A stretch of DNA of 55,721 nucleotides, from NCBI GenBank assembly GCA_943704425.1, contig CALSCP010001832.1, positions 1 to 55,721 of the forward strand, in the 5' to 3' direction. The notes beneath the pieces were generated by a model. It was not told the DNA's origin and did not search any database. It saw only the letters and a list, made by a program, of their open reading frames with translations. This DNA comes from Ministeria vibrans ATCC 50519. Its lineage: Eukaryota; Protista; Filasterea. Each line of letters begins with the position of its first letter. Position 1 is the first letter of the stretch. This document shows positions 14,567-17,785 of this stretch, piece by piece. The translations under genes and the position numbers were made by a program.

Positions 14567-17500
14567 TTATTGAACGGGCAAACTTGAGGTACCATCGTCT
14601 GTGCTATCCGGAGGCAGGGATGCAAGGGATGCTTGGATTGCGGCAATGCGAGGGTGTGAGGGAGGGAGGGAGGCAGTGAAAATGCGGTGCACTCGCTCGA
14701 AGAACTCGCGCGCTTTGACAAAGTCATTTTGAGCTTGGTACAGATACCCAATGTTTTCACACGTTTGGCCGATGGATGGGTGGTCGGGACAGACAGACTT
14801 CTCCTTGACGACCAAAGCACGCTCATAATACTCAAGAGCACGACTGTAGTCTCCTTGTAGCCGATATACTTCTCCGATATTGTTCAAAACGGCGCCAGTG
14901 GATGGGTGGTTGGGACCAAGAGACTTCTCCCAAATGATCAAGGCACGCTCGTAATATACAAGAGCACAACTATAGTTTCTTTGTGCCTGGAACACAATGG
15001 CCATGTTGTTCAATGTGTTGCCGACGGACGGGTGGACAGGGCCAAGAGACTTCTTTTTGGTGGCTAGATCACGCTCATAGAACTCAAGAGCACGACTGTA
15101 GTCTCCTTGTGCCTCAAACACAATGGCCATGTTGTTCAATGTGTCGCCTGTGGATGGGTGGTCGGAACCAAGAGACTGCTCAAAGATGGTCAGAGCACGC
15201 TCATAGTAATCGAGAGCACGACTGTAGTCTCCCTGTGACTGGAACACACCAGCTATGGTGTTCAATGTGTCGCCTGTGGATGGGTGGTCGGGGCCGAGAC
15301 ACTTCTCACGGATGATCAAAGCACGCTCATAGTACTTTACGGCATGTGCAAACTCGCCCTGCTCGTCCAACACACTTGCCAAGGTCTGAAATGCACAAGC
15401 GCCAGTCACAGACTCCTCATCGCCAACACATGCTATCCCCATCTCAATTGCTCGCATCGCTTCAGCATATCGCCCATTGAGACTCCATAGCCCCGACAAA
15501 CGCACTCCAAGCCACACCGCGTCATCGTCCTTCCTTCCCTTCTTCACCATCCGCTCCAAACACCTCATCCCATGCACTCCAACCTCTCGACTCCACTCCA
15601 TCTTAGTGTACATTTTCTCATCCTCATCAATCTCCTCCTGCAACACCATTCCCACACGCAAAAAGCTTTTCCATCTTTCCTCCTCATCATCAAACGCAGT
15701 CGCCCGACACACATCCTGCACCAGCTCGTGCACGCCCAGTCTTGTTCCCGTTCTCTTCACAACAGACAGTCGACACAAAAACAAAAGCGCCACATCAAAC
15801 TCATCCTCACCATCAGCTTCTTCCTCTTCCCCTTCTTCTCTCTTCTTCCCCTCCACCAACAGGCGCAGCAGATCCACTTCAATCCCACTCCCTTCTACCA
15901 TCCCCATCACACCCACAATCTTCTTCACCATCTCCTCCCCACCAATCTCCATCGCTCGCTCGATGCTCGGCCGATACGTCGCCAATACGCGATCCACCAA
16001 CTGTCCATCCCCCGTTCGCTCGCGCAACACCTTCAGCCGGTCACCGCCCAACCTCTTCAAATACACACTCGCACTCGTCTGCTCCATCTCCCCCAGATAC
16101 CCACTCGCAAGCTCAAGCGCAAGTGGCATCCCCCCCAACGCCAATGCAACCTCCCTCAGCGTCTCGCTCTCCTTCTCCTTCCTCAACGGCAACCTCTCCA
16201 GCAGATATGCCACTGCATCCTCCTCCTCCAGCACATCCAACGACAATGCCACATGCTCCCCTCCTCCTCCTCCAAACAGCGTGCCAAACTCTCGCACATT
16301 CTGCAGTCGTGTCGTCACGATCACCTTCCCGCCCATCTGTCCTCGAGGCATCATCTTCACCATCTCCTCCGTCACTGCGTCCCACCCATCCACCACCATC
16401 AACCATCCCTTCACGTGCGACAACCACTGTCGCATCGCCGCCACCACCTCCTCATCTTTGCTCTTCTTTGTCACTTCATGCAGTGGAATGTACGCTGCTG
16501 CCTCTCGAAACGACGCCACCATCGTCCCTGCATTCGTCCCTCGCACCCACAACAGCCATGTGTAATCGTTCACATGCTCCGTCGCGTACACCGCCGCCAG
16601 CGCACTCTTTCCCACGCCACCCGCAGCACGCACCGCGACGTTATTCCCGATCATCGCCTGTCCGTCACTCATCAGTCGCGAGTGAAGCTCCGCCAGCTGC
16701 GCCACACGACCCGTGAAGCAATCCGGTCGCGTAGGGACCATCGCAAGCTTGTTGCGCTCCGTGTAGTTCTTGTTGAAGACCACAAACTCCCCCACGTTGG
16801 CGTCGACACGCCACCCAAGCCGACCCAGCGCACACGTCTGTCGGTGCAACAGGAAATCCGGCCCGTCCCGCATCACTTTCGCCAACTCGACATTGACACG
16901 GTCCGCCACGCACCCAATCGTCGCCCATTCCGCCGCTCCCTCCCCACCGTCACGTCCAAACGCCCCGCTGTCCCCGTCGGGCGACAGCCACGCCCGTCGC
17001 AGAGCCGCGTACAACACCGTGCCAGAGTCGGCACAAAAGGCCGGATATCGGCTCGGCGCAGCCGCAAGGCAATGGAATGACTCTGCCAGATACAGCGTCT
17101 GGAACGCCGCGGTCTCTCCGACGCCTCGTGCCCGTGCGCACACGCGTTGCTGCTGCGGCATGTCAAAGGCCGCTCCCGAGTGGCACGTGTCGAGGACCAC
17201 GAGCGTGTTGCGCCACCGTTGCTCTCGGTCGACGCCCAAATCGTCGTGCAGCTGGTGCATGGTGTACGCGCCCTCATACAGCGGCGCACGGTGGCCGTCG
17301 CCATCGGTGGTCTGATGCACGCACTGAATGTCGGCCAGGGCGGCGCCGTACGAGCGGTCGCTGGCGTTCTCTTGGCCGTGCGCCGCAATGTAAACGACGA
17401 GCTCGTCATTGGTTGCTGCGACGTGGCCAGGCACCATGGAGGCGAGGGCGCGCACGCCAGCACGTATATTCGCGCGTGTCGCCCCCCCAGACTGCCACAG

Positions 17501-17785
17501 GAGGCGGCGGGCCTTCTCCGCTTGCGCCCCATCGTCGATGTATTGTTGTTCCAGCGTCCCATTGTCGAACGCGCCCTGAGGCAGCGCCATGGGCGTGTCC
17601 GCGACCACGACGACCATGAATCCCTGCCGGACCAGGTCGACGGCCACGTTGCGCGCCGTGGGAGCGACGCCCTTGAGCGTGTCGAGCGCAACTGTCTTTT
17701 GGTCGTACCCACTTCGTGTGACGATCAGCGCGTACTGCTGGCCCCGCGAGCGCGTGCCCTTGTTGTCGCCCGATGATGATGCCAT
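14567..17785 (-). CDS. NLR-like STAND protein: caspase-family (C14) protease + NB-ARC + TPR repeats (intronless, 1072 aa from ATG 17785)
   Basis: Catalytic dyad YIAAHG (His codon 17378-17380) and LDTCHSG (Cys codon 17183-17185). NB-ARC motifs FTGR, GGVGKS, WLMVVDGWD, VIVTTR, GMPLAL and VHELVQ. C-terminal 42-aa TPRs of the YERAL...LGPDHPSTGDTLNN type. Confidence 0.92.
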   Translation of the reverse strand: MASSSGDNKGTRSRGQQYALIVTRSGYDQKTVALDTLKGVAPTARNVAVDLVRQGFMVVVVADTPMALPQGAFDNGTLEQQYIDDGAQAEKARRLLWQSGGATRANIRAGVRALASMVPGHVAATNDELVVYIAAHGQENASDRSYGAALADIQCVHQTTDGDGHRAPLYEGAYTMHQLHDDLGVDREQRWRNTLVVLDTCHSGAAFDMPQQQRVCARARGVGETAAFQTLYLAESFHCLAAAPSRYPAFCADSGTVLYAALRRAWLSPDGDSGAFGRDGGEGAAEWATIGCVADRVNVELAKVMRDGPDFLLHRQTCALGRLGWRVDANVGEFVVFNKNYTERNKLAMVPTRPDCFTGRVAQLAELHSRLMSDGQAMIGNNVAVRAAGGVGKSALAAVYATEHVNDYTWLLWVRGTNAGTMVASFREAAAYIPLHEVTKKSKDEEVVAAMRQWLSHVKGWLMVVDGWDAVTEEMVKMMPRGQMGGKVIVTTRLQNVREFGTLFGGGGGEHVALSLDVLEEEDAVAYLLERLPLRKEKESETLREVALALGGMPLALELASGYLGEMEQTSASVYLKRLGGDRLKVLRERTGDGQLVDRVLATYRPSIERAMEIGGEEMVKKIVGVMGMVEGSGIEVDLLRLLVEGKKREEGEEEEADGEDEFDVALLFLCRLSVVKRTGTRLGVHELVQDVCRATAFDDEEERWKSFLRVGMVLQEEIDEDEKMYTKMEWSREVGVHGMRCLERMVKKGRKDDDAVWLGVRLSGLWSLNGRYAEAMRAIEMGIACVGDEESVTGACAFQTLASVLDEQGEFAHAVKYYERALIIREKCLGPDHPSTGDTLNTIAGVFQSQGDYSRALDYYERALTIFEQSLGSDHPSTGDTLNNMAIVFEAQGDYSRALEFYERDLATKKKSLGPVHPSVGNTLNNMAIVFQAQRNYSCALVYYERALIIWEKSLGPNHPSTGAVLNNIGEVYRLQGDYSRALEYYERALVVKEKSVCPDHPSIGQTCENIGYLYQAQNDFVKAREFFERVHRIFTASLPPSHPRIAAIQASLASLPPDSTDDGTSSLPVQ
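14700..15400 (-). repeat. 126-bp tandem coding repeats (TPR units)
   Basis: The anchor AGAGCAC(G/A)ACT(G/A)TAGT recurs at 14835, 14961, 15087 and 15213, an exact 126-bp period, with more diverged flanking units. Confidence 0.9.

Follow-up and report, generated by a model that had tools for sequence, protein, structure and literature searches.

Can a unicellular eukaryote carry, in one protein, a protease, the switch that would turn it on and the sensor that would throw the switch? The question is raised by contig CALSCP010001832.1, a stretch of 55,721 nucleotides (nt) that is here called the window. On its minus strand, at 14567-17785, lies a single open reading frame (ORF) whose translation joins a caspase-like protease domain, an NB-ARC ATPase module and an array of tetratricopeptide repeats (TPRs), which is the tripartite layout of NLR/STAND proteins (N-terminal effector, central NOD and C-terminal repeat array on one chain). 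By analogy with Apaf-1, with plant and fungal NLRs and with bacterial Avs, we put at roughly 60% the probability that this gene, hereafter the receptor gene, encodes a STAND/NLR-type receptor whose oligomerisation would activate its own protease in a defence, self/non-self or death response.

Protease, switch and sensor on one chain

The frame of the receptor gene runs from an ATG at 17783-17785 to a TAA at 14567-14569 and comprises 1072 codons plus the stop, with no internal stops; the reading needs no intron. An initial annotation had given these same coordinates and an uninterrupted, intronless ORF, and translation reproduced both exactly. The motifs that it listed (AHG, DTCHSG, the NB-ARC set and the TPR array) can all be read directly in the translated protein. 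One 1505-nt contig of sequencing run X6 is collinear with 16216-17720 of this frame. All parts of the gene given below are on the minus strand.

The protease domain occupies residues 15-345 (16751-17743). Against Pfam Peptidase_C14 (PF00656), whose gathering cut-off is 21.4 bits, it scored 14.8 bits (E 0.024) over residues 1-370 and 15.2 bits over residues 15-345, while the NCBIfam 'caspase, EACC1-associated type' model matched the first 370 residues at E 2e-5, far under that model's cut-off. Neither this domain nor its best paralogue gave a significant phmmer match in the PDB. The assignment to family C14 is made because four lines of evidence point to it, namely paralogues that score over the cut-off, a structure model, the catalytic pair and ESM Atlas features. 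Six paralogues passed the Peptidase_C14 cut-off (G000:C2636, 46 bits; C138, 29.9; C2175, 27; C1613, 25.3; C1441, also designated L019, 24.1; and C328, 22.8), and the last of these is 52% identical to the protease domain in the window.

An AlphaFold2 model of the domain, built from an alignment of 27 paralogues, had a predicted local distance difference test (pLDDT) score of 91 and a predicted template-modelling (pTM) score of 0.92. With this model as the query, the top Foldseek matches were all members of clan CD (MALT1, metacaspases, a Geobacter caspase-like protein and caspases; E ~2e-6). In VIA-align comparisons legumain gave Z 18.0, with 229 residues aligned at a root-mean-square deviation of 3.4, followed by Arabidopsis metacaspase-4 (Z 17.4) and by caspase-7 and caspase-9 (both Z 16.9), these matches covering the whole domain. 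Identity to solved caspase-type structures was 11-19%. Since the fold by itself does not separate families within clan CD, the C14 assignment is preferred over legumain, despite the slightly higher Z of the latter, because of the Pfam and motif evidence. In the ESM Atlas the nearest clusters were bacterial Peptidase_C14 families (score 0.90-0.91), which we treat as a lead only. CHAT was matched by just one of the 27 protease-domain members, at E 0.05.

The candidate catalytic histidine, His136, is encoded at 17378-17380 within AAHG (motif codons 17372-17386), and the candidate catalytic cysteine, Cys201, at 17183-17185 within DTCHSG (17174-17191). In a profile-to-PDB search His136 fell on the histidine of the caspase-2 SHG motif, and the stretch around Cys201 fell on residues 132-172 of metacaspase-4, which places Cys201 on Cys139 (profile position 178; Arabidopsis C139A entry). 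Both residues stand at strand ends in the AlphaFold2 model, where the 65-residue spacer between them carries extra beta hairpins. Among 30 paralogues the histidine is kept in 27 and the cysteine in 28, across identities of 22-74%; the glycine after the histidine is present in at least 90% of the 27 aligned paralogues. The initial annotation had remarked on an aspartate two residues before the catalytic cysteine. That residue, Asp199, is invariant in all 27, in keeping with a metacaspase-like D-x-C-H-S-G. A confident clan-CD model with the dyad in place likewise bears out the caspase fold, with aligned histidine and cysteine, that had been expected at the N-terminus. On sequence and model, we place the N-terminal domain in the caspase family, as a divergent member carrying a metacaspase-type D-x-C-H-S-G motif; since that motif is of metacaspase type, a basic P1 residue would be our first guess for its cleavage preference.

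The NB-ARC module, with nucleotide-binding, helical and winged-helix parts, spans residues 351-720 (15626-16735) and scored 35.2 bits against Pfam NB-ARC (PF00931; E 1e-8, cut-off 23.5). It contains a P-loop, GGVGKS, at residues 389-394 (16604-16621), a Walker B motif, LMVVDGWD, at 462-469, TTR at 491-493, a GLPL-like GGMPLAL at 551-557 and an MHD-like VHE at 685-687 (15725-15733), where the paralogues retain (V/M/L)H. Across the 14 alignable paralogues all five motifs are conserved.

Six 42-residue TPR units of the TPR_10/TPR_12 type follow at residues 793-1044 (14654-15409; TPR_12, E 4e-60; TPR_10, E 2e-59). Of the three Pfam profiles named with the initial annotation, therefore, NB-ARC and TPR_12 were over cut-off or strong, and Peptidase_C14 was below it. 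The TPR-encoding DNA has a 126-nt tandem period, and its four inner units are 69-80% identical, an ordinary value for this type of TPR. In runs X6 and X17, contigs pass from 14755 to 15144 through 10 letters of other sequence, a net loss of 378 nt, or exactly three TPR units; this may be a collapse of the repeats in contig assembly or a variant in repeat number. A C-terminal tail of 28 residues (14570-14653) is predicted to be disordered, with pLDDT <50 at the end of a full-length AlphaFold model. That model, built from six sequences, had a pTM of 0.50 and predicted the protease part poorly, and only its secondary structure in the NB-ARC and TPR regions was used. In a Pfam scan of the protein, neither CARD nor Death domains were found, nor any output domain of a regulatory kind such as a DNA-binding one.

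Paralogues and outside relatives

The initial annotation proposed counting paralogues across the genome and building a separate phylogeny for each domain, and both yielded results. Genome-wide, the protease domain has at least 34 matches and the NB-ARC module 26, with about 14 genes in which both occur. Members with a complete ORF mostly have the TPR array as well; several short members stop at assembly gaps. Other arrangements also occur. Several copies of the protease domain seem to stand alone, and G000:C1613 is a C14-NB-ARC protein.

Two further genes carry the same type of protease with other sensors. G000:C138 (L021:1239-6767, minus strand) is a 1843-residue ORF with Peptidase_C14 at 27-30 bits, NB-ARC at 107 bits, a P-loop at residue 511 and WD40 propellers, and its NB-ARC matches residues 120-407 of Apaf-1 at E 1.3e-16. 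Judged by sequence, this putative single-chain caspase-like/Apaf-1-like protein is closer to an apoptosome than the gene in the window. G000:C837 (L022:1334-5737, plus strand) is a 1468-residue ORF in which the same caspase-like domain is accompanied by LRR_8 repeats, with no P-loop and no Pfam NOD domain. Thus one protease type is found with TPR in the window gene, WD40 in G000:C138 and LRR in G000:C837.

The protease and NB-ARC trees agreed at their tips and were in strongly supported conflict for three genes, L035, L038 and L018. Because these genes shift place between the two trees, paralogues seem to have exchanged modules with one another, as in other NLR families. L018 (G000:C2675) encodes a 1990-residue paralogue with a highly divergent protease domain and an NB-ARC still close to those of its relatives; its protease head is either decaying or swapped. 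A gene that seemed to recur beside the paralogues was rejected as a candidate. The matches proved to be opposite-strand shadow ORFs of the NLR genes themselves, and the flanks are short. Such ORFs, of 324-502 codons, are also present opposite the receptor gene (window 15477-17080, plus strand) and recur opposite its paralogues; they are expected from the conserved coding sequence on the other strand and are no evidence of genes.

Outside this genome, an exhaustive phmmer search of 1.84 billion representative proteins with the protease domain returned eight matches, all 93-99.8% identical to paralogues of this genome and hence from the same species in metagenomes; at phmmer sensitivity this set held no member of the protease subfamily from another species. 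A word-indexed protein search with the protease region found no match, which says little, and with the NB-ARC region found one, at 62% identity. Outside this species, the NB-ARC-TPR part is nearest to bacterial proteins, from Streptomyces and Nostoc (25-28% identity; 27-28% in the matches over ~65% of the query). The best full-length NCBIfam match was NF040586 (FxSxx-COOH system TPR protein), at 257 bits over residues 350-948; with a cut-off of 300 bits, the protein is related to this family and not a member of it. Among solved structures the NB-ARC profile was closest to Streptomyces AfsR (E 5e-13), then to plant NRC/CNL proteins, and Apaf-1 was a marginal match (E 1e-3).

The best 120 of 195 NB-ARC-TPR relatives had no C14 domain, and the protease profile matched nothing in the 45 closest bacterial NB-ARC loci. 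Because the bacterial NB-ARC relatives are without a C14 domain and the protease subfamily is without a foreign member, the fusion looks, at the sequence level, to have been assembled or to have long diverged within this lineage, and not to be a recent transfer of a ready-made bacterial gene.

Genomic setting, coverage and expression

The receptor gene is flanked by eukaryotic genes. About 450 bases upstream is the start of an opposite-strand gene with CFAP65/HYDIN-type immunoglobulin (Ig) repeats, and downstream a leucine carboxyl methyltransferase (LCM) gene converges on its 3' end. The same 55.7-kb contig carries a Vps54-like gene, a very large EGF/GPS/receptor-L gene and genes for a PH-domain protein and a MyTH4-FERM protein. 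In addition, an MLKL-like gene at 690-3172 (plus strand), ~12 kb away from the receptor, consists of two adjoining ORFs, with a four-helix MLKL_N domain (35 bits against a cut-off of 27) and a protein kinase followed by Armadillo repeats. A penicillin amidase at 26521-28232 (plus strand) is divided between two ORFs, probably two exons, which align to successive parts of its Pfam model.

Elsewhere the genome has three integrin-beta genes (G000:C749, C376 and C2390), two T-box genes (C1301 and C1244) and IFT57 (C1742), a set that we take, from the distributions of these genes as we know them, to fit a single-celled, flagellate relative of animals. An 18S gene lies at G000:C1833:34-1831 (L041). 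A search of the genome for a chlorophyll a/b-binding protein gave no match, though its control was silent as well. The sequencing runs that contain the receptor gene include seawater, algal and marine metagenomes.

Contigs from these runs were compared over window positions 13300-19200. Those of DNA run X1 cover the receptor gene and extend into both flanks. Their k-mer depth is ~86-104 over 15467-17830, the protease and NB-ARC part, versus ~47 in the flanks, a roughly twofold difference, and over the same interval ~2% of their sites depart from the window sequence; another, nearly identical copy or allele might explain this. Across these runs there were 39 variant sites, 25 of them synonymous and 14 non-synonymous, a pattern that fits purifying selection on the frame.

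In run X6, whose type is uncertain, depth was ~393 on the methyltransferase gene, 16 on the receptor gene and 0 on the upstream gene; because it is so strongly uneven, this run is probably RNA. Run X20, on record as a polyA RNA metagenome, contributed two small contigs within 17083-17567. The receptor gene is thus likely to be expressed, with the contigs giving no strand, transcript ends or level. Of the checks named with the initial annotation, the one on expression was answered in part, in that pieces of the gene are present in RNA-type runs, if weakly evidenced. The claim that a caspase-family protease, NB-ARC and TPR are fused in one eukaryotic gene withstood every attempt at refutation that the annotation had named.

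Proposed function and known systems

How would such a chain work? By analogy, the receptor would rest as a closed monomer, held by its TPR array and an ADP-bound NB-ARC. A protein ligand binding to the TPR array would prompt nucleotide exchange in the NB-ARC and then oligomerisation, which would crowd the N-terminal protease heads together and switch them on. The active heads might cut cellular targets or the receptor itself, leading to a defence, self/non-self or cell-death response. We infer the immune or death role from the same analogy.

Several points weigh against this receptor reading. The protein's own Peptidase_C14 score misses the cut-off of 21.4 bits. Its protease activity, oligomer, ligand and substrate are predicted only, and a two-copy (homodimer) fold of the protease domain gave evidence neither way. 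The direct neighbours, LCM and the CFAP65-like Ig-repeat gene, are of housekeeping type. No gasdermin (PF04598) match was found in the genome or beside the receptor gene, in a search that was silent in control genomes too and so proves little. The TPR units are not the near-identical repeats with hypervariable surfaces found in many fungal NLRs. RNA support is thin, in that the sole run on record as polyA gave two small low-depth contigs and the RNA type of the better-covered runs is guessed.

The main rival, which we consider unlikely, accepts a real protease-STAND protein and gives it a job outside immunity and death, in which it would act as a regulated switch for processing or signalling, perhaps in the control of stress responses or of the life cycle. 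AfsR and MalT are STAND regulators of ordinary physiology. That the best solved NB-ARC relative is the transcription regulator AfsR, and the best full-length NCBIfam match an FxSxx-COOH-system NB-ARC-TPR protein, agrees with such a job, as does the neighbourhood, in which neither a defence-type gene nor a gasdermin was seen and PADLOC made a generic TPR match only. However, the sole output domain is a protease, with no DNA-binding or regulatory output by Pfam, and conflict genes usually show the pattern seen in this family, which is large, divergent and confined to one species and whose members have swapped sensors and exchanged modules.

Alternatively, the caspase-like domain may have stopped cutting and, like a pseudo-caspase, act as a scaffold or as the head through which the protein oligomerises. 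Some paralogues have lost the histidine or the cysteine (L018 has arginine for the histidine, L020 alanine and serine, and L005 serine), and the domain is far in sequence from characterised caspases, given its low identity to the solved ones and its lack of a PDB phmmer match. Yet the window gene has the histidine, the cysteine, the glycine after the histidine and the aspartate before the cysteine, and retention of the pair in 27 and 28 of 30 paralogues is hard to explain without catalysis, so we hold this alternative to be quite improbable. That the ORF entered the assembly as a bacterial contaminant, or is a dead relic, is very improbable and, when tested, was unsupported: its nearest non-self NB-ARC-TPR relatives are bacterial, but the identity is far too low and none of the 45 bacterial loci has the protease domain, the gene sits between clearly eukaryotic genes, X1 contigs run from it into both flanks (the flanks and read coverage being what the initial annotation had singled out as the contaminant test), and the frame is intact with mostly synonymous variants.

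Among known systems, the metacaspases (C14B) of fungi, plants and protists share the D-x-C-H-S-G and H-G motifs with the receptor, and Arabidopsis metacaspase-4 has the highest identity among the top structural matches (18-19%). Unlike them, the receptor has neither a type I prodomain nor a type II linker, and it has a spacer of 65 residues between histidine and cysteine together with a fused STAND module. The actinobacterial NB-ARC-TPR proteins (AfsR; NF040586) are closest in sequence to the NB-ARC-TPR two-thirds of the chain, but they bear other heads (SARP DNA-binding, TIR and others) and live in bacterial hosts.

The animal apoptosome consists of two proteins, Apaf-1 and caspase-9, joined through CARDs, and the sensor of Apaf-1 is WD40. 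In the mechanism proposed here, as in the apoptosome, an NB-ARC oligomer would activate a caspase-fold protease through proximity. The receptor differs in being one chain with a TPR sensor and, by Pfam, no CARD or Death domain, and it does not classify as an Apaf-1-type protein. The initial annotation called it 'apoptosome-like', a description that holds for the logic and fails for ancestry, as the NB-ARC-TPR module is nearest to bacterial AfsR/FxSxx-type proteins and not to Apaf-1.

To our knowledge, single chains that combine sensor, switch and protease have hardly been described in eukaryotes outside fungi, and a literature search, which was not exhaustive, turned up no report of a non-fungal protist with a caspase-like-NB-ARC-TPR family. 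In bacteria, metacaspase-NACHT-WD40 proteins are widespread and a metacaspase-NB-ARC protein occurs in Chloroflexus (PMC3501461). These metacaspase/orthocaspase-STAND fusions have, like the receptor, a C14-type head, a STAND ATPase and a repeat sensor in the same order on one chain; here, in contrast, the host is a eukaryote and the protease subfamily has no detected outside member. Fungal NLRs may bear S8 (subtilisin) or CHAT caspase-like heads and are often clustered with gasdermin genes (PMC12881547). They too are eukaryotic one-chain protease-NOD-repeat proteins in large variable families, and NB-ARC with TPR is a common fungal pairing, whereas the head here is C14-like and not S8 or CHAT, and no gasdermin match lies beside the gene or in the genome by the same control-silent search. 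The host itself is non-fungal by gene content, given its integrin-beta, T-box and IFT57 genes.

In choanoflagellates, a survey detected NACHT-LRR proteins and no Death or CARD domain, and NLR-caspase signalling was considered a possible animal innovation (PMC6040629). A host with integrin-beta and T-box genes that carries about 14 caspase-like-NB-ARC genes, one of them Apaf-1-like with WD40, bears on that view. If the host is confirmed as an animal relative and the proteases are active, the family would provide a one-protein model for proximity activation of caspase-fold proteases and a data point on the origin of the apoptosome; if the host is something else, it would be a further example of a design to which conflict systems return repeatedly. 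We can also imagine, as a rather unlikely speculation, that one-chain 'apoptosomes', whose TPR, WD40 and LRR sensors can be exchanged for one another, are the means by which this host controls much of its innate immunity or self/non-self cell death, and that the caspase-like-NB-ARC-WD40 member could reflect a fused Apaf-1/caspase state predating the two-gene, CARD-bridged animal system. The design itself is known from bacteria and, with other proteases, from fungi; what seems to be new is its occurrence as a family in this protist.

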